64,000 bases of DNA from Malacoraja senta (taxonomy: Eukaryota): the NCBI GenBank assembly GCA_038087875.1, contig JAXLNO010000548.1, forward strand, positions 62,001-126,000. Direction: 5' to 3'. Of the stretch, positions 3,296 through 55,717 are shown in pieces. Numbering within the stretch: the first letter of the stretch is position 1; every line of letters starts with the position of its first letter. The notes beneath the pieces are model-generated. The model made no database searches. It saw nothing but the letters and a program-made list of their open reading frames with translations, and had not been told where the DNA came from. Position numbers and translations under genes: made by a program.

Positions 3296-3914
3296 CTGCA
3301 CCTACAGTATTTTCTATGTTTCCATGTAAATCTCACATTCCAATTAATCTCCTCTCTCAATTTTCCCACCACCCACATTCACTTGGGGAAAATTACCTTC
3401 CAGTCAAATAACCTGATCCTACCTCACAAATGTTTATAAACACTTTAAGTGTAACCTTGTTAAATGTCTTCTGAACAGAAGTGATTCATCTTCCCATTTT
3501 CTCTACCATCTCAAAAATGTACATACTTCAGCCGGCATAACTACACTTTTACACATCCTTATTCTTCTCTCTGATAAATTCACAGCAGGTCAAGAGCACA
3601 ATTGCTCGAGCCCTGAGGAATGTATTGCTGGACTCAACTCTCAATATTAATCAGCAAAGGACCCATGTTCTAGGGTATGATTACATTACAAATCTACCAA
3701 ACAACCTTTCCATTTTCAGTGGAAAATAAGGTAAAATAATGACATGGTGCTATAAACTTGACACAGAAATATAACATGTTGGAAATGATCCAACAGCATC
3801 TGTGGAAGTAAATAGAGTTGCAACATTTTAGTTGCCAAATTAAATGATGAAGGTCTAGAATGTGAATTCAGATTTCCTCTCCTTAAGCTTGAACTTTTCC
3901 TTGCTTTCTGGGTA

Positions 3915-4200
3915 TTTAGTTCAATTTAGAGATACAGTGCAGAAACCGGTCCTTCAGCCCACCGAATCCACGCCGACCAGCGATCCCCGCACACTATCAC
4001 TATTCTATGCACACTTGGGACAATTTAGAATTTTACTAAGCCAATTGGTATGTCATTGGAATGTGGGAGGAATCCGGAGGAAACCTGCACCTGTCATGGG
4101 AAGTACGTACAAACTCCATGCAGAGAGAAACCGTAGTCAGGATCAAACCCGGGTCCCTTGCGCTGTAAGGCTGCAGCTCTGCCGCTGCACCACCGTGCTG
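3915..4200 (-). mobile_element. HE1/V-SINE-like SINE
   Basis: Reverse complement of the same family consensus. Confidence 0.8.
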
Positions 4201-5329
4201 AACCATATTTTTAGCATTTCCTGCCAAATCCTAAACTGTATCAGAAGATGACTTCGCATGCAGTCTTGGTCTTATGCCATTTCAAATATTGTTTTGAAAA
4301 TATTACTACAATGGTTTATGAATAATAGAAGTGACTTACTGTACCAGTTAAAAATCATTGTGAAAAATTTAATTCCCTCCAAATTACATTCCCTTCTGTT
4401 GTGCAGCAAGTAAGAATGTCATTGTCCTATCTGGGACATATGACAATAAAATACTCTTGACTCTTGAAGATGTGAGGAAGGGTCTCAACCTGAAATGTTA
4501 CCTATTTCCTTTTGCCAATAATGCTGCATGACCCACTGAGTTACTCCAGCATTTTGTGTCTATCTTCGGTGTAAACCAGCATCTGCAGTTCCTTCTTACA
4601 AAGATGTTCCTCTACCACCTGAGTTCCTACAGCAGTTGTTTTTATGATACTAGGTTGACATGCAATTGAGACATGCTGTGAGCTTTCCTTCAAAGCAGGA
4701 GGACAATTAAGCCCATATGCTCAATCCATGCACATTTTTACCAATGACGTATTGTAAAGCCTTAACAGTACAATTTACATTCAGCTTTCAGATAATGCAT
4801 TCGACCACAAACAGATGTCTATCTCATTAAATTCTACCAGATAAGGCTTGGAAAGTCTGAAAAGGGGTTTCGACCCGAAACGTCACCCATTCCTTCTCTC
4901 CAGAGATGCTGCCTGTCCCGCTGAGTTACTCCAGCTTTCTGTGTCTATCATTGAAAGACATTCTCCCTCCCCCACACTTCCTGCAGCTTAACGTGCTTCT
5001 TTTTTTCCTCCTAGAAAAAGACACAAAGTGCTGGGACAACGCGACAGGTCAGGCAGTATCATTGGAAAACATGGATATGTGGTGTTGTGGAATTGATCCT
5101 TCTTCAGACTCATTGTGGGAGGTTGGGGGGGGGGGTGGTATGGGCATTGTAGAGGGGGAGGGGAAGGGGGAGATGAAGGAAACTGGATGAAAGGAGGGGC
5201 AGGTAATAGGTGAACATAGGTGAGGAGGCGGTAATGGGGGGAGTTGATAGGGAGATTATGGACAAGGGCCAGAGATAAAAATACAGAAGGTGCGCAACAA
5301 AATAATTGAAAGGTTGCAAATGGCAAATT

Positions 5330-5920
5330 TAGAAGGAAGGGGGAGAGGAGGGAAATAGGTGCAAGTCCAGGTGGGCTACAGGGGAGGGGGGCAACGGTGG
5401 GGAGAAATATGGGTGTGGGGGAGAAAGGGGAGGAGGAGGAGGAGGAGAGTAGGGCTTAGGTTTCCTAAAATTGGCGAGTTCAATGTTCACACCATCAGGT
5501 TGAAAGCTACCCAAGAAGAATATTAGGGGCTGTTTGCAATTGACCTCACACTGGCAATGGAGGAGACCCAAGACAGAAAGGTAAATATGGCAATGGGAAA
5601 GGAAGTTCAAGTGGTTAGCAACCAGGAGATCCAGTGCAGAAGTCCATGGCAGATCCAGTTTCGGCGAAATGGTCGTGGAGTCAATGCTTGGTCTCGTTGA
5701 TATACAGGAGGCCACATTGGGAATGCAATAGATCAGTTTAGAGAAGGTGTACATGAATCTCTTGTCTCACCTAGAAGGACTGCTATGGTCCCTCGAGGCA
5801 GACCACAGAGGAGGTACAGGAACAGATGTTACATCCGCAGTTGCAGGGGAGATTACCTGGGATGCTATGGTTTGTGTGGGAAGTGATGAGAATTTTAGGT
5901 AACCTACCCCCCCATTTCTT
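5330..5920 (-). mobile_element. Penelope-like GIY-YIG fragment, degenerate
   Basis: YTFSKLIYCI..LLVANHLN..SVLGLLHC..LGSFQPDGVNIE. Confidence 0.75.
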
Positions 5921-6959
5921 CCCCTCCCCTGTGCCCCATCTGGACTTGCATCTATTTCTGCCCTCCCCCGTCCCGTTCATCCATTCCTCTATTTTCACAA
6001 TTCACCATTCTTTAATTCCTTTTGTCTTTTCATCTCTGGCCTTTGTTGTCGGAAAATCCTCTCTGCAACATTTTAGTTTAGTCTATTGTTACGTGTACAG
6101 AGGTACAGTGAAAAGCTTTTGTTGCCTGCTAACCAGTCAGCGTAAAGACAATACATGATTACAAACTAACCATTTACAGAGTAGAGATACATGATGAGGG
6201 AATAACATTTAGTGCAAGGTAAAGCCAGTAAAGTCCGATCAAAGAAAGTACGAGGGTCACAAATGAGGCAGATAGTAGTTCAGGACTGCTCTCTCATTTT
6301 GGTATCTATCACCTATCATCTGCCATACTTTGTTCTGCCCCTCCTCTCTTCCAGCTTTATTTACCCCCACAATCAGTTTGAAGAATGGTCCTGACCCAAA
6401 ACCTTAGCATCCCACGCTCTCCAGTAATGCTGCCCGTCCCACTGAGTTATTCCAAAACTGTGTCTTATTTTGTTAACCAGCATCTTCAGTTCCTCCTTTC
6501 TTCTTTCTCCTCCTTCCCAGTCCTGAAGGGTCTCTGGCCTAAAACATTCTGCTTTCCTGCCCACAGATGCGGCCTGACCTACTGCATATTGCCAGTGTAT
6601 TCGGTATTTTACTAAAGTCAATTTTAATAATACTATTCCTGCATGCATTAATGAATTACTATCCTTTTCAACTATGTTCAAGGTATGAACATTTCAGCAT
6701 GCAATTCTACCGTAAAAATATCATAAAAATACCAAACAACAGTGTTATTCAAAGAAGTAGTTAATATCGAGACATGTTGGAATCTTGAGCAATGAAATAC
6801 TGGAGGAACTCAGTGAGTCAGGCAGCATCTGTGGTTGGAATGGACAGGTAATGTTTTGAGTCAGGACCCGTCTTCAGTAGTTTAAATAGTTTTGAATCTA
6901 GCTACTTGCAATAAATCAGTAATTTTAGTGGTTTTTAAGGTTAGTTTAGAGTTAAGGGT

Positions 6960-7250
6960 TGACTTGAGAATTAAGGGACAGAAGTTTAGGGGTAACATGA
7001 GGGGGAACTTCTTTACTCAGAGAGTGGTGGCTGTGTGGAATGAGCTTCCAGTGAAGGTGGTGGAGGCAAGTTCGTTTTTATCATTTAAAAATAAATAGGA
7101 TAGTTATATGGACGGGAAAGGAATGGAGGGTTATGGTCTGAGCGCAGGTATATGGGACTAGGGAAGAATACGTGTTCGGCACGGACTAGAAGGGTCGAGA
7201 TGGCCTGTTTCCGTGCTGTAATTGTTATATGGTTATATTATATGGTTATA
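6960..7250 (+). mobile_element. CR1 LINE 3' end
   Basis: FRGNMRGNFFTQRVVAVWNELP, ending CTGTAATTGTTATATGGTTATA. Confidence 0.8.
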
Positions 7251-7535
7251 GCGGAAACAGGCCCACTGGGTCCATGCTGACCATTGATCTCCCATTCACT
7301 CTAGTTATTCCACTTTCTCGTCCACTCTTTACACACTAGGGGCAATTTACATAGGCCAATTAACCTACAAAGCTGCATGCCTTTGGGTTGTGGGAGGAAA
7401 CCGGAACACCTGGAGGAAACCCACTCGGTCACAGTGAAAATGTGCAAACGCCACATAGACAGACCTGAAGTCAGGATTGAACCTGGGTCTCTGGCGCTAT
7501 GAGGCAGCAACTCTCTACCATTGCACCACTGTGCT
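7250..7535 (-). mobile_element. HE1/V-SINE-like SINE
   Basis: Head, V-core and tail present in reverse orientation. Confidence 0.75.
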
Positions 7536-10500
7536 GTACTTCACAAAACCCATTAGCCAGATCAACACACGTAAATGGCAAAGAAAATCAAAGGAGCATT
7601 GGCGGCCATGGGTGCCTGTGTTATATGGAAAATAAATTGTGAGGAATAGGACTGATGAATGAAAGAATGATTGAATGATACTCTATTGTCACATGTACCC
7701 AGGGTACCTGGGTATAGTGAAATGCTTTGTTTTCCATGCAACCTCGGTCTATCCTTGACCGGACTTTGCTGGCTTCACCTTGCATTAAACATTATTGTAA
7801 TCATGTATTGTCTTTCTACTGACTGGTTAGTAAGCAACAAAAAGCTTTTCACTGTACCTCGACACGTGACAATAAACTAAACTGAACCTAGGCTGTACAA
7901 AAATGTCGTCATGTGTTGGCGCAGACAAAGTTACAAAGTACCGAACAGTCCTATCCACTGCCTGTTGCCACACATGGCAGCAGACCCCATCCCCACCAGT
8001 TCCCCCTTTGTTCTTAGTGGCGCCCCCATCCCCACAGTTCCCCATTTGTTCTCGTCCCCCTCAATGGGACAGCCTCCCTGTGCTGAATGCCCTACGTCTA
8101 CAATGTTCTAAGTATAAGATTAGATTAAGCAATGCTCACTGTTGAACTTTGTACCTGCAAACCTTTATTACTTTGTTGGTCTGTTTGAATACAAACATTC
8201 TTGGGTGTTCTTGTCTGTACAAACTAAAATGTGTTGGTTTCTCTGTGACGTTTGAATTCGGGTATCATGCTCACCAATCTTTTTTAACAGATGCAGCATG
8301 GAAACAGGCCTTTCTGCCCACTGAGTCTGCACTGACCATCAACCCATACACTAGTTCTATGTTTTCCCTGTTTCACATCCTACACACTCAGGGCAATTTA
8401 CAGTGGCCAATAAACCTACAAACACACACGTCTTTGGAACGTGGGAGGAAACAATAGACAATAGACAATAGGTGCAAGAGTAGGCCATTTGGCCCTTTGA
8501 GCCAGCACCGCCATTCAATGTGATCATGGCTGATCATCCCCAATCAGTACCCCGTTCCTGCCTTCTCCCCATATCCCCTGACCCCGCTATCTTTAAGAGG
8601 CCCATCTAGCTCTCTCTTGAAAGTATCCAGAGAACCGGCCTCCACTGCCCTCTGAGCACCAAGAGGAAAGCCGAGCGGTCACAGGGAGAACGTATCAACT
8701 CCATACAAACAGAACCCATTGTTGGGATCCTTCTTGTGTGTGTAGGAAGGCACTGCACATGCTGGCTTACACCAAAGATAGAGACAAAATACTGGAGTAA
8801 TGCAGTGGAACAGGCAGCATCTATGGATAAAAGGAATGTACCTTCTAGTATCCCACTCTCTTTATATATTAATTTATTGTAATTGGAGCAGTCTGCAAAA
8901 CTCGCCATAGACAAGAACAAGTGTTTATGTGGATTGGCTACCATTAAACTCTAGTCCACTGCAATGAAATGCAGATTTAGCATTTTACAGATCAATACTT
9001 TGAGGGCCCCGTTTACAATGATATGTGCATCCCATCATTTAGAATGCCCCTTCACCTACTCTTTTGAAGCCTTCTCCACACATATAGTCACAGAGACACA
9101 CAAACAGAACCTTCAGCCAACAGTCCACTGACCATGAAGCACTCATTCCATACCATTCCATCCCACCATTGAATAGATCTACAGGAGGTGCTCCTTCAGA
9201 AAGACAGCTAATATCATCAGAGACCCACACCACCCTGGCCATACTCTCAGGGCCGGACACCCTGGACCTGGAATTCGCCCGGAAGATCTGGCCCATCCAT
9301 CACGGACTGAGTTCTTGCTCGCTGTGGACCGTGGATGGAGGACCCACCTGGAAGGCCCAGCTCTCCCGCCCAGAGTGGAAGGAGTCAGATGGATGGCTTA
9401 TAGGCAGACAGGCTGCGGGAGGGAATGGACTGCCTCAACAGTGGAGTGGGTGCTGGAGGCCCTACAGCAGCCTGGGACTTGGCTGTTCCAGGCGCTGATC
9501 CAAGAGGCCGGGCACATGGACCAGTTGCGCCCTGCAGCAGTAGAGGACACCACAGCTTCGATTGGACAGGTCAACCCTCAACAACACCAGGACAATGGGC
9601 CTCATGGTCAGGCCAAGAACCCTCACTTACAACAACTGGGACATGAAAATGGCACCATAAACTGGCGACACTGTATACTGTCTCAGCGTACTACTGCTAT
9701 ACACTTATACTGTATCCGAGATGCTTATCTAAGATGTATCTAAGGACTTATATATAGTGATACTTGTACTAAACTGTATACAATAATGAATTTCACTGTA
9801 CCTCGGTACTTGCCACATATAAAATACCGTTGAACCAATCAACTGTCTCTGAGGTTAGAGAGCCTGAGAACTGTTAGCTCCAGGTTTAAGAGCAGCTTTT
9901 TTCTCATGAGCAGCAGGCATTTAAACACTGCACAACACGAACCACAACCTTACCTCAACAACTCTGATCTGTGATGGACTTTATTTTGGTTGCAGTAAGG
10001 ACGTTTGTTTTTCCACTGTTGTGGTCTGGTTACCTAGTATAACTAATAGTAATTTATTTTACCATTGATTGTTGTATATTTAATATGTGTATAAGAATTT
10101 CATTGTTCCATTGCCAGTACAGATGACAATTAAACTCTTGCTCTTGATCAACTCATTCTTATTCTCTGCAAGTTCCCATCATCTCTCTCCAGATTCTATC
10201 ACTTACCTACAAATGACAGTCAATTTACATTGAAGAAACAAGGAACTACAAATGTTGGTTCACAAAGAGACGCAAAGTGCTGGAGCACCTTAGTGGGTCC
10301 GGCAGCATCCCTGGAGATCATGGATATGTGATGATGGATAGATGTTTCGGGTCAAGACCCCTTCTTCACTCTGTGGAAGGGTGTTTACCCTAAACGTCAT
10401 CTAGCCACGTTCTCCGGAGATGCTGCCTGACCAGCTGAGTTACTCCAGCACTTAGCGATAGACACAAAATGCTGGAATAACTCAGTGGGTCAGGCAGCAT

Positions 10501-10929
10501 CTCTGGAGAATAGGAATGGGTGATGTATCAGATTGAGGCCCTTCTTCAAACTTTGTCATCATTGTGCTAACTTGCTCCATCCCATTCACCCATCATCTTT
10601 CTGATTGAAAAATATTCAGATTTTAAACTCTGATCATTGTATTTAAATATCTAAGACCAACAGCTCTTTCATTCAAAGCATATCTTTCAATCATTTGTTC
10701 TCATATATCTCTATATCACCGCCTGTATCTCTCGTTTCCCTTTCCCCTGACTATCAGTCTGAAGAATGGTCTCGACCTGAAACGCTACCTATTCCTTTTC
10801 TCCAGAGTCGCTGTCGGACCCGCTGAGTTACTCCAGCATTTTGTGTCTATCTTCGGTTTAAACCAGCATCTGCAGTTCCTTCCTACGCAGCTCCTCCCTC
10901 GGCATGCATACAGTCCATACAATTTCACA

Positions 10930-11160
10930 GTTGAGGTTAGCGTTGTGTATTGTTCACGTGCGTGATAGTTGTTGGGAAGAAGCTATTCTTGAACCTGGTT
11001 GTCATGGTTTTCAGACACCTATACTTTCTTCCCCATGGTGGGAGGTAATGAAAGCGTGGCCAGGGGGATGATGTTGCCTTCCTTTTTGAGGCAGCGTCTC
11101 GTGTGGATCCCTTCGATGGTGGTGAGGTCAGAACCCACGATGAACCGGGCAGTATAACTT
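10930..11160 (-). mobile_element. Rex1/Babar-type LINE 3' fragment
   Basis: YLPPWGRKYRCLKTMTTRFKNSFFPTTI. Confidence 0.65.
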
Positions 11161-12289
11161 CCTGATTATTCACAAATTTAAGTATTTCATCTGAAGAGCA
11201 GGCCTAAGTAATAGAATTGCTCTCTAAATATCCCTTCCTCTTATTCTTCCTTTAAGATGCACCTTAAATGTTTATTTTGCTAATTGTCATGTCATGCCAT
11301 TATACTGCTCGAAGTAAAATGTTACAGAATAATATTCTTACGAATCTCATTGAAGCATTTTCCTACATTGGAACTGCTATAAATGTTATTCTTTATATCT
11401 AAGCCTGTTTCCCCTTTCACCAAATTAGATTATTACCATCAAAGGAGAATGTCATTGTTTTGTTTGGCTCTAGAGATGCATGTTGGAATGTGATCATTAA
11501 AATCTTCCCGTATATTGAACCCTGAACTACACTACACTCAGCTATGATTAATGAACAAAATAAAGTGTTGGAGTAACTCAGCAGATCAGGCAGCATGGAT
11601 AGGTAATGTGTCGAGTCGGACCCTGTAGACCTATGGACTGTCTTTGGTTAAACTAAGCATTCGAGGTGTTTTTGCACATGTATTGGGATTATCAATTAAC
11701 TGGATTTTTAGTATGTTATCTATTTGTTTTGTCTTACAGGTCTGCTAAGCTGCTACAAGAATTTCATTGTTTTGTAGTCAGCACATATGACAATTGAACA
11801 CTCTATACTCTCTTTCCTTCTGGATTCTCTTGTGGAGTGGGATCAAACCTAACATCAGCAAAATGTTGCCATTCATCCTTTGTTCCCAATCTCTGATATT
11901 CTATAAGATCATAACCGATCCTCCAGCAGACAACCATTTTCCCGAACTAACCCAGAATTCCTTTTGTATCCAAGCATCTTCCTATCCCTGCCTCAAGCAT
12001 CTGATTGACTGAATGCCCACAGCCTTCTTGGACAGAGAATTTGAAAGACTAATTACCCTCTGGGTGAAAAGATTTCATCTCATTACTGCACTGAATTCAA
12101 CGATTCAATGATATTTTATTGTCACATGCACCTAGGTACAGTGAAATACTTTGTTTCGCATACAACGGTAAAATCATATAGCAGACCTAACCTAGGCAAT
12201 ACACAAGTGTCACCATGTTTTGGTGCCATAAGAATGTCTGAAGCCTTATTTTTAAACTGTGAATTTTGGTTCCAGACACACCAGTCTGG

Positions 12290-12815
12290 GGAGAAATAAA
12301 AAGATCATCCCTCATGTTCTGAACTTTGACTCACTTCATAAGTCAAAGGTGCAGAATTTGGTTGTTCAGCCCATCGAGTTTACTCCACAATTTAATCATG
12401 GCTGACCTATCGTTCCCTCTCAGTGCCGTTCTCCTGTCATCTCCCTGTGACCTTTGACACTCTTACAAATCGGGCGGCATTTTCTGTTTTTGTATTCCAG
12501 TCCTCTTGATATAAATCACCTTCCTGACTACCGATTCAATTTGCAAATTAACCTTTTAGGAGTCCTGCACCAACACTCCCATGTCACTGTGTGCCTCCGA
12601 TTTCTGGATTCTCTCTCCATTTGTAAAATAATCTACGCCTTTATTCTTATTACCAAAATGCATGTCTCCACACTTTGCTATACTGGATTTCATCTGCCAC
12701 TTCTCTGCCCACTCTCCTAACCCGAACAAGTCCTTCTGCAAAGTCCTTGCATCCTCTACACTGCCTGCCCCTCCACCTATTTTAGCATCATCTGCAAACT
12801 TGGCCACATCACTAC
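12290..12815 (-). mobile_element. CR1 LINE fragment
   Basis: VAKFADDAKIGG..LQKDL..LGEWAEKWQM. Confidence 0.85.
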
Positions 12816-13064
12816 TAAACAACATAAACGTGACGACCGCACGTTTGGAGCTAAGAGTTGTCACTCAGTCAATAGCAAAATCCACAGTGTGTGCTAATCT
12901 TTTAATGATTTTGCATTGTACTAGTGCCTCGCTCTCTTCCCACATTTCAGAATCAGATCAATCAGAATCAGAATCACACTTTATTCGCCAAGTATGTTTT
13001 GCAACATACGAGGAATTTGGCCATAAACTTGAACCTGTCAAACAATGCACTTTGTGTAGGATAG

Positions 13065-13965
13065 AACTGCAGATGCTGGTTTAACTCGAAGGTAGACACA
13101 AAATGCTGGAGTAACTCAGCAGGCCAGCAGCATCTCTGGAGAGAAGGAATGGGCGACCTATCGGGTCGAGACCCTTCTTCAGACTGATGTCAGGGGAGTT
13201 GATGGGACAAAGATAGAATGTAGTTGAAGACACTAAGACTAGTGGAAGAACTGGGAAGGGGGAGGGGATAGAGAGGGAAAGCAAGGGCAATTTAAAGTTA
13301 GAGAAGTCAATGTTCATACCGCTGGGGTGTAAACTACCCAAGTGAAATATGAGGTGCTATTCCTCCAATTTGCACTGGGCCTCACCCTGACAATGGAGGA
13401 GGCCCAGGACAGAAAGGTCAGATTGTGAATGGGAGGGGAAGTTGAAGTGCTGAGCAACCAGGAGATCAGGTAGGTTAAGATGGACAGAGCGGAGTAGTTC
13501 AGTGAAATGATTGCCGAGCCTGTGCTTGGCCTCACTGATGTAGAGAAGTTGACACCTGCAACTGCGGATACAGTAGATGAGGTTGGAGGAGGTGCAAGTG
13601 AACCTCTGCCTCACCTGGAAAGACTGTTTGGGTCCTTGGATGGAGTCGAGAAGGGAGGGAAAGGGACACGTGTTGCATCTCCTGCGGTTGCAGGGGAAAG
13701 TACCTGGGGAGGGGGTGGTTTGGGTGGAAAAGGACGAGTTGACCAGGGAATTTCGGAGGGAATGGTCTCCACGGAAAGCAGAAAGAGGTGGAGATGGGAA
13801 GATGTGGCCAGTATTGGGATCCTGTTGGAGGTGGCAAAAAATGATGGAGGATCATATGCTGTGCGACGGCTGATGGGGTGGAAGGTGAGGATAAGGGGGA
13901 CTCTGTCCTTGTTATGAATGTGGGGGGAAGGGAGAGCAAGAGCGGAGCAGCGAGGAAACCCTAGT
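13065..13965 (-). mobile_element. Penelope-like element 3' part: linker + GIY-YIG + terminal repeat
   Basis: PLILTFHPISRR, RQRFTCTSSNLIYCIRSCRCQLLYISEAKHRLGNHF..HFN, GSLHPSGMNIDFSNF. Confidence 0.88.
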
Positions 13966-14257
13966 GAATGCCTCGCTCCTGTTTGTTTTACACGAGTTAA
14001 AATCAGTTTAAACCAATATCTGTAGTTCCTTCTTCCACAAAGGAAACGGGGCATTGTGCAAATCAATGCAGAAATTCCAGTCTGGATTGTACTGAAACAG
14101 TGGAGATTAAACCCTTTTAACGTCCGTCCGCATGAACCATGAATCAGACTGAATGTGTATTGCGCGCTTTTTTAAACTCAGTCGCCTCCGGTCAAGATTG
14201 AGATAAAGCCAAGACGCTTTTAGCCAGTAGTGAATAAAATGAGTATCATTAACTTAC

Positions 14258-14309
14258 CTGCTTGAGCCCCTTGTACGCGGAAGAAACTCAACAAGATGAA
14301 CAGAATCAT
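14258..14309 (-). CDS. Leader exon of a second MHC-like gene, MILFILLSFFRVQGAQA; downstream exons not found in the window
   Basis: ATG, 17 codons + 1 nt (52 nt, the same size and phase as exon 1 of the complete gene), consensus donor CAG|GTAAGT. The peptide aligns with MLLFTLLNTYGVATVSS and is preceded by a homologous promoter module. Confidence 0.65.
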
Positions 14310-14383
14310 TTCACGCACAACCTCACGCATCAACAGCAGCAACTGAGCCAAACTTCACCAACATCAAAGCAGGATCTCATCAT

Positions 14384-14426
14384 GCAATCAGAATCAAAAT
14401 ACCACGGGTCGTCACCAGTTGTCGAG
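14384..14426 (-). promoter_or_regulatory. X1-X2-Y-like module upstream of the second leader exon
   Basis: In gene sense: CTCGACAAC (X1-like), TGACG (14414-14410), a 21-nt spacer, ATTGC (14388-14384, a variant Y box). The X2-Y spacing is identical to the module at 55886-55856, and both share GTGACGA..GTGGT..ATTC..ATTG. Confidence 0.6.
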
Positions 14427-15829
14427 CGATGTCATTGAACCAGCAGGAAACAATTGACTGTAATGGAGACACGAGGAGGTGCTGATGCTGATTTACAACA
14501 ACAAAAGACCCAAAGTGCTGGTGTAACTCAGCAGGTCAGGTCACAACTCCGGAGGGCATAGATAGGTGACGATAGACACAAAGCGCTGGAGTAACTCAAC
14601 GGGTCGAGCAGCATCTTTGGAGAAAAAGGATAGGTGACTATTGTCAGTCTGAAGTAGGGTCCCAATCTGAAACAGCGCCTGTCAATGTCCTCCAGAGATG
14701 TTGCCCGACCTGCTGAGTTACTCCAGCACTTTGGTTTTATCGCACTCTATAGCAAATGGAATGGAAAGGCAGGGCGTAGTTGCCTGGAACTGTAATTACG
14801 TTTCAGATAACGCTCCATACTTGTGCTGCTAACTGCTCCTTATGTTATGATTCAGGAGACCCATAAATCCAATGCCTATCCTGACTTGAATCATTACAAT
14901 GCAGAACAAAAAGGAGGAAACCAAACACTGTACACAGCAGGTAGAGCTGCTGCCTCACAGCACCAGAGACCAGCGTTAGATCCTGACCTCTGGTATTGTC
15001 TGTGTAGATTTTCTTTAAGAAAGAACTGCAGATGCTGGAAAAATCGAAGGTAGACAAAAATGCTGGAGAAACTCAGCGGGTGAGGCAGCATCTATGGAGC
15101 AAAGGAATAGGCGACGTTTCCGGTCGAGACCCTCCAAGAAGGGTCTTGACCCAAAACTATTCCTTCGCTCCAGAGATGCTGCCTCACCCCCTGGGTTTCT
15201 CCAGCATTTTTGTCTAGCTACTGTATAGATTTTGTTCCTTCTTCCTGTGACCACCTGGGTTCTTCCCGGGTGCTCTGGTTTTCTCCCACATTCCACAGGT
15301 GTGTGGGTTTGTCAGTTAATTGACATCTGTAAATTTCCCCTAGCGTATGTGGGGATTGGACAAAAAAGTGGGAAAACATTGAACTAGTGTGAAGGGGTGA
15401 CTGGTGGTCAGCATGGTGGGCTGAAGGGCCTGTTTCCATGTTGTATCTTTCAACTCAAAATGGAATTCTGTAAAACAGTTATATTGGAAGCTAGTTTGGA
15501 CATTGAAACTGTGGAGCAAATGGTGGTGGATATAGACGGCGATGGTGTCTACAAATTTATCAAGGATCTATATCCGATATGGGGAGAACTTACACAATAG
15601 CATTGGTATTGGTTTATTATTGTCACTTGTATTGTGATATAGTGAAAAGCTTTTATTTGCATCCTAATCAAACCAGATCAGGAATGACTGAGGGATTGTA
15701 TTGAACAACAGGGCAGGCTTGTGGGCCTGTTTCAATGCAATAAACTCCATATCAATGTACCATATAAAGAATGCAGGTGCTGGTATGGTTGGTGATGAGC
15801 CCAAAATATTGCTTTTGTAATTCAAGATA

Positions 15830-16140
15830 TCCTCAGTGTTGCAACGGTAGAGTTGCTGCCTATAGCAGCAGAGACTCAGGTCGATTCTGACTAACGGTGC
15901 TGTCTGTACGGTGTTTGTACATTCTCCCTGCATCTCCATGCGTGACTGCATTGTTTTTCTCTGGGTGCTCCAGTTTCCTCCCACATCTCAAAGAAGTACA
16001 TGTTTTTAGGTTAATTTGCTTTGGTAAAATTGTAAATTGTCACCTGTCGTGGTATAGTACTATTGTACGGGGAGTTAGCGAGGACTCGGTGGGCCGAAGG
16101 GCCTGCTTCTGTGATGTACCTCTGAAGTCTAAAGTCAAAA
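15830..16140 (+). mobile_element. HE1/V-SINE-like SINE
   Basis: Head, V-core and tail present. Confidence 0.8.
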
Positions 16141-17014
16141 TGTTAATTTCTATTCATTTTAATTTTCAGCTCTTAACCAAAATCATTTCAATCAACCCAA
16201 AGATGTCTGTGTTTCTCCCTCACTACATCAGATTTAAGTCTGCATTTTTAAAAATGCTTTTAATTTTGCTCGGATAGTGCTGAACTAATTTGCTTATGTT
16301 ACTGGAGTTATAACTCACAGCAGTGACCACAGTAAGCAAGAGACATCAAATACATGAACACAAGAAAGGAGAAGCAGGAATAGGCCCACAAGCCACTGGC
16401 AGAATTAGTCCAAACCAATGTTTTAGTCCATATTACTCAACCACTGATAGAGGCCACATTATTCTGCTCCCTTCTCCCTAAAGTTTAGTTTAGTTTATTA
16501 TTGTAATGTGTACAAAAATACGGTGAAATACCATGTTTTGCATGCTATCCAGTCATAATACACCATACGTGAGTGCAATCATAAACAAGTAAGAGTGCAA
16601 TGATTGTAGTGGGTAATTGTAGAGATCACAAGAAAAATGAAGTACTTGTTGGCCATGAGTAAAGTCTGTTCTGCAGCTCAATTAGGTCATGACTGATCTA
16701 CTCATGACCAGAAGAGTCTGTAGCCAGTAACCAACAACTTCCCAAAGAAACAAATCCATCCTTCTCAGTAACGTAATGAATCTACACTCTGCAGTTGAAA
16801 ATTCCCATGATTCGTTATCATCTGGGAGAAAAATAAAACAATTTTCTCCTCAGTTTGAAACCTTGGCCTCCAAGGTCTAGTTTCCTCCATGAGGGGAACT
16901 ATCAAGAACAGGAGGAAATAGAACAGTAGTAGGCTATCAGCCCCTGAGAATAGTCACCAAACTTGTCCCACCATTCAATAAAATGATCACTGTTCAGTTG
17001 GCCTCAGCTCCTTA

Positions 17015-17535
17015 GATTAGTTTGGTTTAGAGGTACAGCCTTGAAACAGGCCCTTAGGCCCACTGAGTCTGTGCTGACCAGTGACCCCCCCACACTAACA
17101 CTATCCTACACACACCTGGGGCCAAATAACCTGCAAACCGGCATGTCTTTGGAGTGTGGGAGGAAGCTGGAAGCCCCAGAGAAAACCCACACAGGTCACA
17201 GGGAGAACGTAAAAAATCCATACATACAGCACCCATGGTCAAGATCAAACCTGGGTCTCTGCCACTGTAGCAACTCTACCGCTGCTACTCCGTGCCACCC
17301 CTTTGCGTCACCATGCTGCCTACACAGTTCTATCCTATACACATAGGACAATTTACAGATGCCAATTAACCTATAAACCTGCAGGTCTTTGGAACTGGGA
17401 GGAAACGAAAGCACCAGGGAAAACCCATGCAGTCACAGAGAGAACATACAAAGTTGGTACAGACAGCACCCTTAGTCAGGATCAAACCGGAGTCACAGGT
17501 ACTGCAAGGAAGTAACTCCACTGCTGTGCCCCTCT
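17015..17535 (-). mobile_element. Two adjacent HE1/V-SINE-like SINEs
   Basis: Two V-core copies, at about 17150 and 17395. Confidence 0.75.
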
Positions 17536-18489
17536 GATTGAAATGTTGGTTGCAAGTTCTAACTTTATTCATGAGAGTAATCGTCCACAACACAAGTAAA
17601 AATAGCAGAAGTGGACTACTCCTCTGTTCCTTTACCCCAAAACCGTCAATTGCCTGAATCTTTCAAAGATTTCTCTATCTGTTCATAAGCATATCTAATG
17701 CCTTAGCCACCACCACCTCTGGGCACAGAATTCCAGCGATTCACACCGTTCTGAAAGAAGTAATTTTTATGTACCTCACTTTTAAACAACTGGTCCCTTA
17801 TTCTGTAGTTGTTTCCCATTGTTTTTAGACTTTCCCACCAGTGAAACATCTCAACATCTATCATGAAAAGCCCCTTAAGATATTGCATGTGTGAATAAGG
17901 TCACTCATCACTTTCTACACTCCAAGGAATGCAGACCTAAAGTGTTTACCGCTCTTGATGGGACAACCTTTTCATCTCTTGACTTAGTTTGGTGAATTTC
18001 ACCTGGTCTGCATCCAATGCTCCTATACCCTATTTAATGTTAAACTGTGTGCGGTTTTCCAGTTATTGACTCACTATCATCCTGCATAATTCCAATATAA
18101 CTTCCCTGTTCTTAAATTCCATCCCCTTTGCAGTAAAGACTGCATTTTTTCCATTGGTTACTGGGCCTGCTACTAACTTAATTTGATGCATGCACTTGAA
18201 TACCAAGATCCCATCTGAACTTCACTCAGTTACAGTCTCTCTCCATTTAGACAATAATCCACCATTTAAGGTTTAGCTTGAGGTTTGTTATTGTGATGTG
18301 TACCAAGGTACGGTGAAAAGCATTGTGTTTGCTGTTGTATACATAAATACTATCAAGCCAAACACAAGTACAATAGGCAGACTGAAGGATAAGATACAGA
18401 GTGAAGAATATAGCTCTCAACATTATTGTACAACAGTTCCAGAGACAAAATCCAATGGCCATATTGAGGTAAAGGAGAATTGGGAATGG

Positions 18490-19005
18490 GTCCTAGCACA
18501 TGGAACATTCAAAAGCCTGATAACAGAGGAGAAGAAGCTGTTCCTGTGTCTGGTGCTCTACACCTTTAAGCTCTGCATCTTCTGCCTGATGGAAGTGGAG
18601 AAAAAAGGAATCACTAGTGTGAGAAAGGTCTTTGACTATGTTGGCTGTCTTCCTGAAGAGGCAGGAAGTGTAAATGGAGACAATGATGGGCAGTCTGGTC
18701 TGTGTGATGGACTGTGCTACATCTACACCTCTCTGCAATATCTTGTGGTCTTGGGCAAAGCTATTCTGAAAACAAGCTGTGATGTAACCTGATAATATGC
18801 TTTCTATGGTGCATCTATGGAAGTTGGTAAGAGTCATTGGACACATACCAAATTTCCTCAGTCGTCTGAGGAAATGGAGGCATTGGTGTGCCTTCTTGGC
18901 TGTCCCTTCAATGTGGTTGGTCCATCAAGGTTCGTTGGTAATATTTACACCAAAGAATTTGAAGCTCTCAACCATTTCTACTTTGGCACCATTGATACTG
19001 ATTGA
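18490..19005 (-). mobile_element. Rex1/Babar-type LINE fragment
   Basis: VEMVESFKFFGVNIT.., LTNFHRCTIESILSGYITA. Confidence 0.75.
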
Positions 19006-19827
19006 GGCAAGCTGACTTGATTCCTCATGCCAAAGAGCATGACTCGAAACATCACCAATTCTACCTAGAGATGCTGCTTGTCCTGCTAAGTTACTCCAGC
19101 ATTTTGTGTCTATCTTCAGTGTGAAGTAGCATTTGCAGTTCCTTCCTACACAATTTGGCTGCTCCACTGAGAAATCTCCTCAAGGTATGCCTACTTTGAA
19201 GAAGTTCTCCTCTCTCCAACGAGAGTTCTACAGTCCGAAAATGGGTCTCGACCTGAAACGTCACCCATTCCTTCTATCTAGAGATGCTGCCTGTCCCGCT
19301 GAGTTATTCCAGCATTTTGTGTCTATCTTCAGCATGACCTCACAGTTTCCCACATTAAACACATTAGCCAGGTTTTGACTAATCACTCAAGCTATCTATA
19401 TCCTGTTGTAAAATCATACTTTCCTCATTAAACCGTGCCATTTCATCTATTTTTGTATCATTGCCAAAACTGTCCTTACATTGGTTCCCTGCTCCAATTA
19501 GTTGAGGGGAGCCCTGATAGAAGTATGTAAAATTATGAAAGGCATGGATAAGTTTGGCTCCCGTTTGGCAGAAGGTGCAGAAGATTGAAGGCACGTACCA
19601 CCAGCCTCAGCGACAGCTTCTTCCCCTCTGTTATCTGGCTACTGAACAGTTTTTCTGTAGGTTATGGTAAGTATGATTTACCTCTATCCACCGAGATCAT
19701 TGGTGTTTCTCACTGGAACTGATGCGCTACAATGCTGAGATTGTTATGCTGCATGATATTATTCCCCTTTTAATTGATTATATCTGTGTATGGTATATCC
19801 AATCTGTTTGGATAGCATGGCATGCCT

Positions 19828-20200
19828 AGGTCCTTGGATGGAGTTAAGGGGGGAGGTAAAGCGACAAGTGTAGCATTTCCTGCAGTTGCAAGGGAAAGTA
19901 CCAGGGGAGGGAGTGGTTTGGGTGGGAAGGGACAAATTGACCAGGGAGTTACAGAGGGTGCAGTCTCTTCAGAAAGCTGAAAGGGGAGAAGATGAGAAGA
20001 TGTGGCCAGTGATGGGATCCCGTTGGAGGTGGCGAATATGTCGGAGGATTATCTGTTGTATGTGACGGCTGGTAGGGTGTAATGTGAGGACAAGGGGGAC
20101 TTGTCACGAGTGGGGGGATGGGGAGTGAGAGCGGAGCAACGAGATATAGAAGAGACCCTGCTGAGAGCCTCATCTACAGTCGAAGAGAAGAAGCCCCGTT
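19828..20200 (-). mobile_element. Penelope-like fragment, inverted relative to the adjacent copy
   Basis: Homologous to the minus-strand PLE at 13.2-13.9 kb (ERGFFSSTVDEALSRVS.., PLVLTxHP..). Confidence 0.8.
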
Positions 20201-20204
20201 CCTT

Positions 20205-20860
20205 AACTTCCCCTCCCCTGGCACTTTCACTTGCAACCGCAGGAAATGCTACACTTGTCGCTTTATCTCCCCCCTTGACTCCATCCAAGGGCCTAAGCAG
20301 TCTTTCCAAGTGAGGCAGAAGTTCACCTGCCCCTCCTCCAACCTCATCTATTGCATCCGCTGCTCTAGGTGTCAACTGCTCTACATCGGTGAGACCAAGC
20401 GCAGGATTGGCGATCGCTTCGCCCAACACCTCCGCTCAGTCCGCATTAACCAACCTGATCTCCCAGTGGCTCAGCACTTCAACTCCCCCTCCCATTCAGA
20501 ATCCGACCTTTCTGTCCTGGGTCTCCTCCACGGCCAGAGTAAGACCCTCCGCAAATTGGAGGAGCAGCATATCATTTTTCGCTTGGGTAGTTTACACCCC
20601 AGCGGTATGAACATTGACCTCCATTTTCAGGTAGTCTTTGCTTTCTCCCTCCTTCCCCTCCCCTTCGAAGCTCTCCCACAGCCTACTATTTCCACCTCTT
20701 CCTTTCTTCTTCCCGCCCCACACCCCCATATCAGTCTGAAGAAGGGTCTCGACCCAAAACGTCACCTATTCCTTTGCTCCATAGATGCTGCCTCACTGCT
20801 GAGTTTCTCCAGCATTTTTGTCTACCTTGGATTTTTCCAGCATCTGCAGTTCTTTCTTAA
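20205..20860 (+). mobile_element. Penelope-like element 3' part: GIY-YIG endonuclease + terminal repeat
   Basis: CNRRKCYTC..QKFTCPSSNLIYCIRCSRCQLLYIGETKRRIGDRFAQHLRSV..HFNSPSH, then the terminal repeat with the CTGAAGA..AAAC motif. Confidence 0.9.
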
Positions 20861-21269
20861 ACATGTACTTGTTCCTTGTACTTTTCCTGAGTGTATGGTG
20901 GGGCTAATATGGAGTGAGCTTTACCCAAAATCAAATGCGAGGTAAGAGTTGTTTAATTGTCATATGTATCAACAATAGAACAACAAAATTCTGACTTGCT
21001 GCAGCTTCACCTGCATGTAACTGCAATAACACAGAGATAATATAAAACAACCAATATAACAATAAATTAATAACTGTAATACTGGACTATCATAATAGTG
21101 CAAAAAACTAAATTCATATTACATTCAAAGACAGTCCGTAGATGATCATAGATGCTGAAGTTAGTTTTGTGTGGTGTTGAAGAGCCTGATGATTGCTGAG
21201 AAGAGACTATTCTTGAATCTGGTTGTCACGGTTTTCAGGCTGCTGTATCTTTCCCTATATCTATACTTA

Positions 21270-21576
21270 GGGGCGGCAGGGTGGCGCAGCGGTAGAGTTG
21301 CTGCCTTATAGCACCAGACACCAGGGTTCGATCCTGACTATGGGTGCGGTCCACACGGAGTTTGTATGTTGGGTGAACGCATGGGTTTTCTCCGGGTGCT
21401 CCAGTTTCCTCCCACACTCCAAAGACGTACAGGTTTGTAGGTTAATTGGTTTGTAAATTGTAATTTGTACCTAGTGTGTGTAGGATAGTGCCAATGTAAA
21501 GGGATCATTGGTCTTCGCAAACTTGGTAGGCCGAAAGGCCTGTTTCCATGCTGTATCTCTAAACTAAACTAAACTA
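21270..21576 (+). mobile_element. HE1/V-SINE-like SINE
   Basis: GTGGCGCAGCGGTAGAG head, GGTTCGATCC, V-core and (CTAAA)n tail. Confidence 0.88.
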
Positions 21577-21622
21577 ATTCTGCCCTGAGAGTGTGTGCAT
21601 GGACAACGCAGACACAGCTTAA

Positions 21623-39486: not shown

Positions 39487-39978
39487 AAGAGCATAGAACA
39501 GTACAGCACAAGAACAGGCCCTTTGACCCACAATGTTTGTGCCGAACATGATGCCAAGACCAATTGTTATCTGCTTGCACATAATCCATATCCATCCATT
39601 CCCTGCATATACATGTGCCTATCTAAAAGTCTCTTAAATGCCACTATCATATCTGCTTCCACCACCACCTCCAGCAGCACATTCCAGTCACTCACCACCC
39701 TTGGCGTAAAACACTTGTCCTGCACATCTTTTTTTAACTTTGCCACTCATTGTAAAGCAATACCTGCTCTTATTTGATATTTCCTTCCTGGGTAAAAAGT
39801 CTGATGGTCTACCCTATCTCTACTCCTCCCAGTTTGATATATTACTGTCAGGTCTCCCCTCAATCCCCGACATTCCAGAGAAAACAATCCAACTGTCCAG
39901 TCTGTCCAACTTCTCCCTGTGGCTAATACCCCACTAATCCAGGCATCATTCCGGTAGACCTCCTCTGCATCCCAAAGG
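39487..39978 (-). mobile_element. CR1 LINE 3' fragment overlapping the last codons of the MHC exon 5
   Basis: GATGCAGAGGAGGTCTACCGGAATGATGCCTGGATTAG..GTTGGACAGACT..GAGGGGAGACCTGA matches other CR1 copies in the window (e.g. 28790-28910, 31490-31610). Confidence 0.85.
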
Positions 39979-40166
39979 AAGCTGATTGTGCTTCATGGTC
40001 CTCTCCTGGTCTCTGCTATTGTCAGCTGGTACCTGTTCATTGAAAGGTTTTCTCTTTTTCCTCTTCTTCCAGCAACCAATTCCAAGGATGATCCCCAGGA
40101 GAATGAGAGGAACAATTACAGCTCCAGTCACGATCCTAATCTTCATATCTTCTTTCACTGCCCTCT
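39946..40166 (-). CDS. MHC class I-like exon 5, connecting peptide + transmembrane + cytoplasmic tail
   Basis: Acceptor ccaacag, phase 1. Translation ERAVKEDMKIRIVTGAVIVPLILLGIILGIGCWKKRKKRKPFNEQVPADNSRDQERTMKHNQLPLGCRGGLPE* has a 22-aa hydrophobic span followed by a basic stop-transfer cluster. An internal donor (GAACAG|GTACCA) cannot be excluded. Confidence 0.8.
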
Positions 40167-47967: not shown

Positions 47968-48240
47968 CCTGTGGAACATTGACTCCCTGCAGCAGAGTTG
48001 CATGTTCGATGTAACAGGAGAATTTTGCCACATCTTCTCTATTCAGTTGAATTGTATTCTTCAGCTGGTAAGTCCCATCCCAATTGGGCAACAGATCACT
48101 GGATTCAGACTCATGGACCCCCTCACCATCTCTCAGCCACGTTACATCAATGGCCCGTGGCTAGAAGCCTGTGACAAGGCAGGAGAGTCTCAGTGATTGC
48201 GACCCATCACGTTTAATCCCAATAAACACCTCAGGGGTTT
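47968..48240 (-). CDS. MHC class I-like exon 4, alpha3 Ig-C1 domain with an in-frame stop
   Basis: Acceptor ttgcag, donor G|GTAAGT, 273 nt. Translation ETPEVFIGIKRDGSQSLRLSCLVTGF*PRAIDVTWLRDGEGVHESESSDLLPNWDGTYQLKNTIQLNREDVAKFSCYIEHATLLQGVNVPQ contains C1-set motifs LSC.VTGF(Y)P, W, DGTYQ and C.I.H. Confidence 0.93.
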
Positions 48241-49444: not shown

Positions 49445-49720
49445 CTCTCCTCTGTAGTGCTTCTTGTCCACACTCCAGATATATCCGCAGCCACTTCACA
49501 CAGTCCTTCTCCAGGAGATCTTTAAAATACTTGTTCATGAAGGTGTTGACGTTCCACCGATCTGCTAGCATCTGGAAATCTGGACGTAGTGCAATCCAGC
49601 GCATTCTGTCCTTGTCAAAAGCACAGGCATCCTCCCCATCATAACCCAATCTGACAAACCCATCAGTGGAATTGTCACTGTCCACTTCACAGCCGCAGAA
49701 ACCCTGCACAAAGCAAACAG
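49445..49720 (-). CDS. MHC class I-like exon 3, alpha2 domain
   Basis: Acceptor ccccag, donor G|GTACAC, 276 nt. Translation TVCFVQGFCGCEVDSDNSTDGFVRLGYDGEDACAFDKDRMRWIALRPDFQMLADRWNVNTFMNKYFKDLLEKDCVKWLRIYLECGQEALQRR contains GCE, YDGED and C..WL..YL motifs. Confidence 0.95.
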
Positions 49721-51464: not shown

Positions 51465-51725
51465 TCGAGATACCATGTTGCTGTTGGTAGACTATCTCAG
51501 CATTTCCTCTGACAATCCCATGAAAACCTGCAACTGTGATGGCCATTGAATCCCAGTGATCCTGCGGGAAAGACTGGGCCATCCATCGCTGTCTGGGAAC
51601 AGCCCGCTCTAGTGTGCTGTCAAAATATGCTATCTGGACGTCATCCAGCATTGCTACCATACTGTACTCAGGCAGCTCATTCAATCCATGGTTCAACAGG
51701 TAGTAAAATGCAAGATGGTGTAAAT
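51465..51725 (-). CDS. MHC class I-like exon 2, alpha1 domain
   Basis: Acceptor ttgcag, donor A|GTAAGT, 261 nt. Translation DLHHLAFYYLLNHGLNELPEYSMVAMLDDVQIAYFDSTLERAVPRQRWMAQSFPQDHWDSMAITVAGFHGIVRGNAEIVYQQQHGIS contains the class I alpha1 motifs PEY/F, D..QI.YFDS, PRQ.WM and WD. Confidence 0.93.
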
Positions 51726-55665: not shown

Positions 55666-55717
55666 CAGAGGAGACAGTGGCCACACCGTAAGTGTTCAGT
55701 AAGGTAAAAAGAAGCAT
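55666..55717 (-). CDS. MHC class I-like exon 1, signal peptide MLLFTLLNTYGVATVSS
   Basis: ATG with A at -3, 17 mostly hydrophobic codons + 1 nt, donor G|GTAAGC. Phase 1 matches the alpha1 exon. An in-frame TAG lies 21 nt upstream and the X-Y promoter module lies directly upstream. Confidence 0.8.

Follow-up and report, generated by a model that had tools for sequence, protein, structure and literature searches.

The window analyzed here is a 64,000-nucleotide stretch of Malacoraja senta contig JAXLNO010000548.1, which serves as the reference frame for all positions given below. It contains, on the minus strand, a gene of five coding exons of 52, 261, 276, 273, and 221 nt, separated by introns of 3940, 1744, 1204, and 7801 nt (Table 1). 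Every junction is in phase 1, and the introns begin with GT and end with AG throughout, a pattern conserved in Leucoraja and Pristis. One domain per exon together with phase 1 at all junctions is the layout of an MHC class I heavy chain, and all of the PDB matches of the gene are class I chains. For comparison we used the corresponding loci of Leucoraja erinacea (L001) and Pristis pectinata (L002), a Leucoraja gene fragment (L003), and Amblyraja radiata CM021389.1 (L004).

Table 1. Coding exons and sequence changes of the class I gene in the window, in the order of transcription
Feature	Position	Strand	Evidence and remarks
Exon 1, ATG at 55717, 17-aa leader + 1 nt	55666..55717	-	ATG and gtaag donor conserved in L001:100-151 and L002:3081-3132
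Exon 2, alpha1 domain, 261 nt, phase 1	51465..51725	-	Pfam PF00129 (MHC_I), E 1.4e-5 with this exon taken singly, slightly short of the gathering score; ~94-95% aa identity to Leucoraja XP_055486430
Exon 3, alpha2 domain, 276 nt, phase 1	49445..49720	-	Pfam PF00129 (MHC_I), E 2e-16; frame and acceptor fixed by phase and orthologues
Exon 4, alpha3 C1-set Ig domain, 273 nt, phase 1	47968..48240	-	Intact apart from the stop
Premature TAG, codon 223, replacing Tyr in GFYP	48161..48163	-	Derived C>G at 48161
Exon 5, which encodes the connecting peptide, the transmembrane segment, and the cytoplasmic tail with its TGA (39948-39946)	39946..40166	-	tblastn; alignment to L001 and L002
9-bp in-frame deletion in the cytoplasmic tail	40000..40001 (site)	-	Three codons present in both Leucoraja and Pristis

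Exon 4 is bordered by ...cttgcag before 48240 and by gtaagt after 47968. Its reading frame runs ...LSCLVTGF-stop-PRAIDVTWLRDGEG..., so that the GFYP motif becomes GF-stop-P. Both Cys residues and the Trp of the C...GFYP...W...C signature are present, and the alpha3 segment that follows the stop matches the C1-set family (Pfam, E 6.9e-9); the motif Tyr is replaced by TAG, and the encoded domain is interrupted. Exon 5 is the last coding exon. For exon 3 a nearer tgcag was considered as the acceptor and rejected, the phase and the orthologues placing the acceptor at ccccag/CT (here and below a slash marks the exon boundary).

Orthologues and Relation to Shark UGA

An exhaustive HMMER search with the alpha1 domain returned one close protein, Leucoraja erinacea XP_055486430. 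The Leucoraja locus L001 is collinear with the window from ~55814 to 33057 (~22 kb) at 86-94% identity, a span that takes in the promoter, all of the introns, and 7 kb past the gene. Between the window and L001 the non-coding divergence, 0.085 substitutions per site, equals the coding dS of 0.085. Judged from these alignments, the window gene is the orthologue of the Leucoraja gene. With the Leucoraja protein as the query, 11 further species of sharks and rays each yielded one close homologue (54-72% identity); beyond Leucoraja and these 11 species this query found no comparable homologue. The copy number was one per species in the 12 other species searched. In a maximum-likelihood tree the 13 sequences form one clade (SH-aLRT 99), and its topology agrees with the species tree; Hypanus and Mobula were represented by their proteins only. 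The window gene, being collinear and with one gene per species, belongs to the orthogroup 'MR1-like' (Leucoraja XP_055486430, Pristis LOC127585976, and others). The supplement of PMC10751288 assigns the Pristis orthologue, in its MHC map, to MHC-Ib.

The Amblyraja locus L004 is collinear with window positions 3518-21620 at ~86-93% identity, and the protein records contain no Amblyraja member of this orthogroup. On CM021389.1 the orthologue would be expected outside L004, roughly 18-35 kb past position 523,347. The window is ~8-10% diverged from both Leucoraja erinacea and Amblyraja radiata.

The sister of the 13-member clade is a group formed by Pristiophorus P0007, Amblyraja P0154, and Leucoraja P0156, with an SH-aLRT of 97 for the pair of sister clades; this placement is subject to a long-branch caveat. 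The group so formed corresponds to shark UGA. By sequence, the PDB entry that matches best is 9ch4 (phmmer E 2.9e-60), entitled 'Crystal structure of shark nonclassical MHC CLASS I, UGA'. The same entry was the best fold match in a Foldseek search with an AlphaFold model of the ectodomain of the Leucoraja orthologue (pLDDT 87.5, 99-sequence alignment), with a TM score of 0.83-0.90 and an identity of 36-37% in the alignment. Shark UGA thus offers the closest solved structure and is the closest named lineage to the window gene. However, the 13 orthologues sit in a sister clade of their own, outside the UGA clade. The support for this clade, together with the low identity to 9ch4, leads us to treat the window gene as a separate lineage and not as UGA itself. 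UGA and UFA have been described as single- or low-copy, MHC-linked genes of the lipid-binding type (PMC12562908).

A UGA-like leader exon is present in the window at 14258-14330 on the minus strand, 25 kb downstream of the TAG-bearing gene. It reads MREVVREMILFILLSFFRVQGAQA, followed by gtaag, and 2-3 of its residues differ from the UGA-like leader of Leucoraja and likewise from that of Amblyraja. Apart from the leader, no exon of this neighboring gene was found within the window. In Leucoraja the orthologue of the window gene and the UGA-like gene are on one scaffold, and the window gene is apparently a neighbor of shark UGA.

The classical anchors for the peptide termini, as judged by eye, are mostly missing from the window gene, which we take to argue against UDA identity. 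The best mammalian sequence match of the alpha2 domain is MR1.

The Leucoraja genome also holds an old partial duplicate at L003:11723-14218 (scaffold JAMYXN010000412.1), which consists of the alpha2 and alpha3 exons only and is ~87% identical to L001 and to the window. In its two exons it has accumulated at least 4 lesions: exon 3 has lost its acceptor as well as its donor, exon 4 has lost its donor, and a stop codon occupies the position of a conserved alpha2 Cys. It is nonetheless annotated as a 263-aa protein (XP model P0177). The public models of the intact orthologues also contain errors. The Leucoraja model is labeled 'partial' and misses the real leader exon (L001:100-151), and it carries between alpha2 and alpha3 a 12-aa insert derived from an intron (L001:12984-13019, pLDDT <50). 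In the Pristis model a spurious first exon of 72 aa (L002:501-716) replaces the conserved leader (L002:3081-3132).

The Premature Stop Codon

The sequence-only reading had placed a TAG where Tyr is expected, at 48163-48161, in an alpha3 exon that is otherwise intact, with all splice sites preserved. Direct reading and comparison with the orthologues bear out both points. The codon is TAC in the Leucoraja gene, in the Pristis gene, and in the Leucoraja fragment, and Tyr is invariant at this position in 12 of 12 elasmobranch orthologues, from which we conclude that a single C>G transversion took place on the window branch. With one codon at stake chance has no bearing on the matter; what counts is TAC in three related sequences and the invariance of Tyr. 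Elsewhere the reading frame is open across 360 codons; the sole indel is the in-frame deletion in the cytoplasmic tail, which is derived on the window branch. The ATG and all eight splice sites are canonical and match those of the orthologues. Inspection of the coding sequence, the splice sites, and the ATG of the window copy revealed no second lesion.

The same picture emerges from the conserved positions of the protein. In 111 columns that are invariant among the 12 other orthologues, the window sequence differs at the Tyr only (110/111 kept), and the number of private changes at such columns is 0-6 per intact orthologue. A disabling lesion in an otherwise conserved codon is what identifies a pseudogene or a null allele, and the window gene has such a lesion.

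Two replacements in alpha2 are specific to the window. At codon 107 (49713-49711) Phe is changed to Cys, which puts a new cysteine beside the CGC motif, and at codon 183 (49485-49483) Leu is changed to Arg within KWLLIYLE. Both look non-disabling, since the other orthologues vary at both positions.

Age of the Stop Codon

With Pristis used to polarize the changes, the window branch has 12 N and 9 S changes, and the branch leading to the intact Leucoraja gene has 16 N and 8 S. The end branches of the protein tree are equal (0.049 for the window vs 0.050 for Leucoraja). Neutral evolution over the whole branch would have left an expected 4.9 further lesions, and the probability of finding none is 0.007; for half of the branch it is 0.085. 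These expectations use the densities of indels and substitutions in the flanking non-coding DNA. Relaxed constraint and secondary lesions, the marks of a long-standing pseudogene, were thus not found in the window copy.

We also fitted our own codon model, a maximum-likelihood GY94/F3x4 model with three taxa (window, Leucoraja, Pristis). The estimates of omega were 0.52 (window), 0.76 (Leucoraja), and 0.32 (Pristis). On the window branch neither omega = 1 (p = 0.54) nor omega equal to the background (p = 0.27) was rejected; the changes are too few to give the comparison any power. Since the codon model rejects neither hypothesis, the dating rests on the lesion count and on the invariant-site count. 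A binomial calculation on the N:S counts gave p ~0.02 against neutrality, but it ignores transition bias and for that reason is not relied on here. The window branch shows no more replacement change than that of Leucoraja, and all but one of the invariant columns are kept, from which we judge the stop to be very young.

When the two skate branches are taken jointly, omega is 0.65, vs 0.32 on the long Pristis branch (LRT p = 0.037). The replacement changes, in the window as well as in L001, fall mostly in alpha3 and in the cytoplasmic tail. The gene may have come under looser constraint in skates in general.

Predicted Fate of the Transcript and the Protein

Translation up to the stop yields, from the exon lengths, a product of (52+261+276+77)/3 = 222 aa, made up of the 17-aa leader and 205 aa of mature protein, from which the transmembrane segment is absent. 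The coding sequence has its last junction between exons 4 and 5, and this junction lies 193 nt downstream of the stop. Both figures had been put forward in the sequence-only reading, together with the expectation of nonsense-mediated decay; both were recovered on recomputation, and the exon-junction rule does predict decay. By this rule a transcript becomes a target once its stop precedes the last exon-exon junction by more than 50-55 nt. The position rule was established in mammals, and decay that depends on the junction complex has been documented in fish, namely in zebrafish (PMC12668785, PMC7310861); cartilaginous fish are included by extension.

We propose the following course of events. 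The change of TAC to TAG, by C>G at 48161, would have arisen in one skate haplotype. Normally spliced mRNA from this haplotype, with its stop well ahead of the last junction, would mostly be removed by nonsense-mediated decay. Any residual protein would be a secreted piece of 205 aa, comprising alpha1 and alpha2 with 26 residues of a broken Ig domain and an unpaired Cys. Having neither an intact Ig domain nor a membrane anchor, it would be expected to misfold. Given the predicted decay of the mRNA and the truncated, anchorless, misfolding product, such a haplotype would be without a working gene.

Possible Exon 4 Skipping

The sequence-only reading had also pointed out that skipping of exon 4 would bypass the stop and give an in-frame protein that consists of alpha1, alpha2, and the transmembrane segment. 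As far as the arithmetic goes this is right. All of the exons are in phase 1, the join of exon 3 to exon 5 is in frame (G/AG = Glu, the junction codon being Glu either way), and the product has 269 aa. The proposal that this is a route taken by the gene found no specific support, in that the splice sites are unchanged, the platform is unadapted, and the stop is too young. The phase-1 symmetry itself is uninformative, since it is shared by HLA-G and MR1, both of which skip exon 4 without loss of the frame.

The splice signals around exon 4 are those of the intact orthologues. Its acceptor, 1.2 kb from exon 3, has 15 pyrimidines out of 20, and its donor, AGG/gtaagt, has a perfect intronic GTAAGT. 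The exon 5 acceptor, ccaacag/AG, lies 7.8 kb further on and is weaker, with 10 pyrimidines out of 20. The alpha3 exon is therefore neither absent nor weakly defined: it is present, its splice sites are unchanged, and they are stronger than the exon 5 acceptor. A cryptic donor, GAG/GT at position 11 of exon 4, was considered as another way around the stop and rejected because it is out of frame with exon 5.

On the window branch alpha1 and alpha2 have undergone four replacement changes only, none of them at a conserved column, and we thus see no sign of adaptation to the lack of alpha3 and beta2-microglobulin. The stop, at the age estimated for it here, is too young for decay specific to alpha3 or for adaptation of the platform to show.

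An alpha3-less bypass of a lesion already has precedents in mammals. HLA-G4 is an alpha1-alpha2-transmembrane form that is produced through exon 4 skipping, and the HLA-G*01:05N allele still gives rise to isoforms that lack the damaged exon, homozygotes being healthy (PMC3021195). As in that system, the window holds a non-classical class I gene under purifying selection, with a premature stop in exon 4, and any isoforms that skip the lesion would be in frame. However, HLA-G*01:05N carries a 1-bp deletion in exon 3, in contrast to the nonsense substitution in the window gene. The rescued isoforms of HLA-G*01:05N are documented by transcripts, whereas those of the window gene are hypothetical. 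Nor is the window gene orthologous to HLA-G. MR1B, an alpha3-less, membrane-anchored product, arises by exon 4 skipping in a class Ib gene (PMC7508857), as the 269-aa form would. It is, however, a regular minor isoform of an intact gene, with no stop involved, and the resemblance of the window gene to MR1, at ~30% identity, does not indicate orthology.

The layout of the hypothetical skipped product, alpha1-alpha2-anchor, would also match that of EPCR and RAET1/ULBP. The genes for these molecules have no alpha3 exon at all, and their platforms have long been adapted to folding without beta2-microglobulin. In the window gene, by contrast, the alpha3 exon is present and conserved, its splice signals are complete, and adaptation of this kind is not seen in the platform.

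Discussion

The data presented here indicate, with good probability, that a very recent germline nonsense mutation has struck the skate copy of a conserved elasmobranch non-classical MHC class I gene. Most likely the gene is an ordinary, very young null allele or pseudogene, rather than a new two-domain receptor. This outcome was among those raised in the sequence-only reading, and it gains support from the single derived C>G at an invariant Tyr, from the lack of a second lesion, and from a stop position that predicts decay. The verdict rests on one haplotype, and null allele and fixed pseudogene are kept as a joint reading. Searches of the protein databases with the post-stop piece of alpha3, and with the alpha1 open reading frame, over a size range that takes in both the 222-aa and the 269-aa products, returned no sequence from the same species.

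A single lesion in an otherwise flawless gene is also what an assembly or base-calling error, or a somatic change, would look like in an intact gene; the living gene would then have TAC and be fully functional. We consider this unlikely. Substitution errors are rare in polished long-read assemblies, roughly 1e-5 per base or less, and by our computation a random substitution in this coding sequence creates a stop in only ~4% of cases, so that, for a non-classical class I gene, a null allele has by far the higher prior. It is considerably less probable still that the gene is an old pseudogene, decaying since before or around the split from the other skates. The failure of the codon model to reject omega = 1 on the window branch would allow for it, as would the joint skate omega in excess of that of Pristis (0.65 vs 0.32, p = 0.037), but omega is higher in the intact Leucoraja gene than in the window (0.76 vs 0.52), no second lesion is seen where 4.9 would be expected (P = 0.007), and 110 of the 111 invariant residues are retained. 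What a truly old copy looks like can be seen from the Leucoraja fragment L003, which is visibly decayed, in contrast to the window copy with its one lesion. We see almost no likelihood that read-through of the TAG supplies some full-length protein. The base after the stop is C (TAG C), the leakiest fourth base; on the other hand, the downstream CCACGG does not fit CARYYA, the motif known to favor read-through of UAG, the basal rate of read-through typically stays well below 1%, and decay would lower the amount of template further.

There remains functional rescue through exon 4 skipping, by which the allele would produce a 269-aa alpha1-alpha2-transmembrane protein of EPCR/ULBP layout that might be independent of beta2-microglobulin and escape nonsense-mediated decay. 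The in-frame join of exons 3 and 5 speaks for it, as do HLA-G4, HLA-G*01:05N, and MR1B as mammalian precedents, and nonsense mutations may disrupt splice motifs within an exon and so promote its skipping, in an estimated 5-30% of cases (PMC8464065). With this estimate and the mammalian precedents, a low level of the 269-aa form is plausible. A minor skipped transcript alone does not amount to a function, however, and even for human MR1B the protein had been reported in overexpression systems only (bioRxiv 10.64898/2026.10.17.759879). The phase-1 symmetry is not specific to such a rescue, the signals of exon 4 are strong and match those of intact orthologues, the competing acceptor of exon 5 is weaker and farther away, and the platform has not changed at conserved columns. 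Taken together, these points make functional rescue very unlikely. Slightly less probable again is that the TAG allele is not dead because it mainly yields a tolerated or useful in-frame alpha1-alpha2-transmembrane protein, through disturbed definition of exon 4 or through background skipping combined with decay of the normally spliced message. If the allele did mainly yield the skipped form, it would represent a first step from full class I genes towards beta2-microglobulin-independent molecules of the EPCR or ULBP type, caught in a lineage that keeps the three-domain form in sharks and rays.

Null alleles and young pseudogenes are common among non-classical class I genes. Read as a very young case of either, the window gene is, as it stands, an ordinary one. 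Its modest interest comes from the gene itself, a strongly conserved elasmobranch MHC-Ib lineage that one skate haplotype has, on this reading, just lost. If the stop were fixed or common, the old gene would be dispensable in that species, and animals that carry the TAG would be natural knock-outs in which the function of the lineage could be probed.
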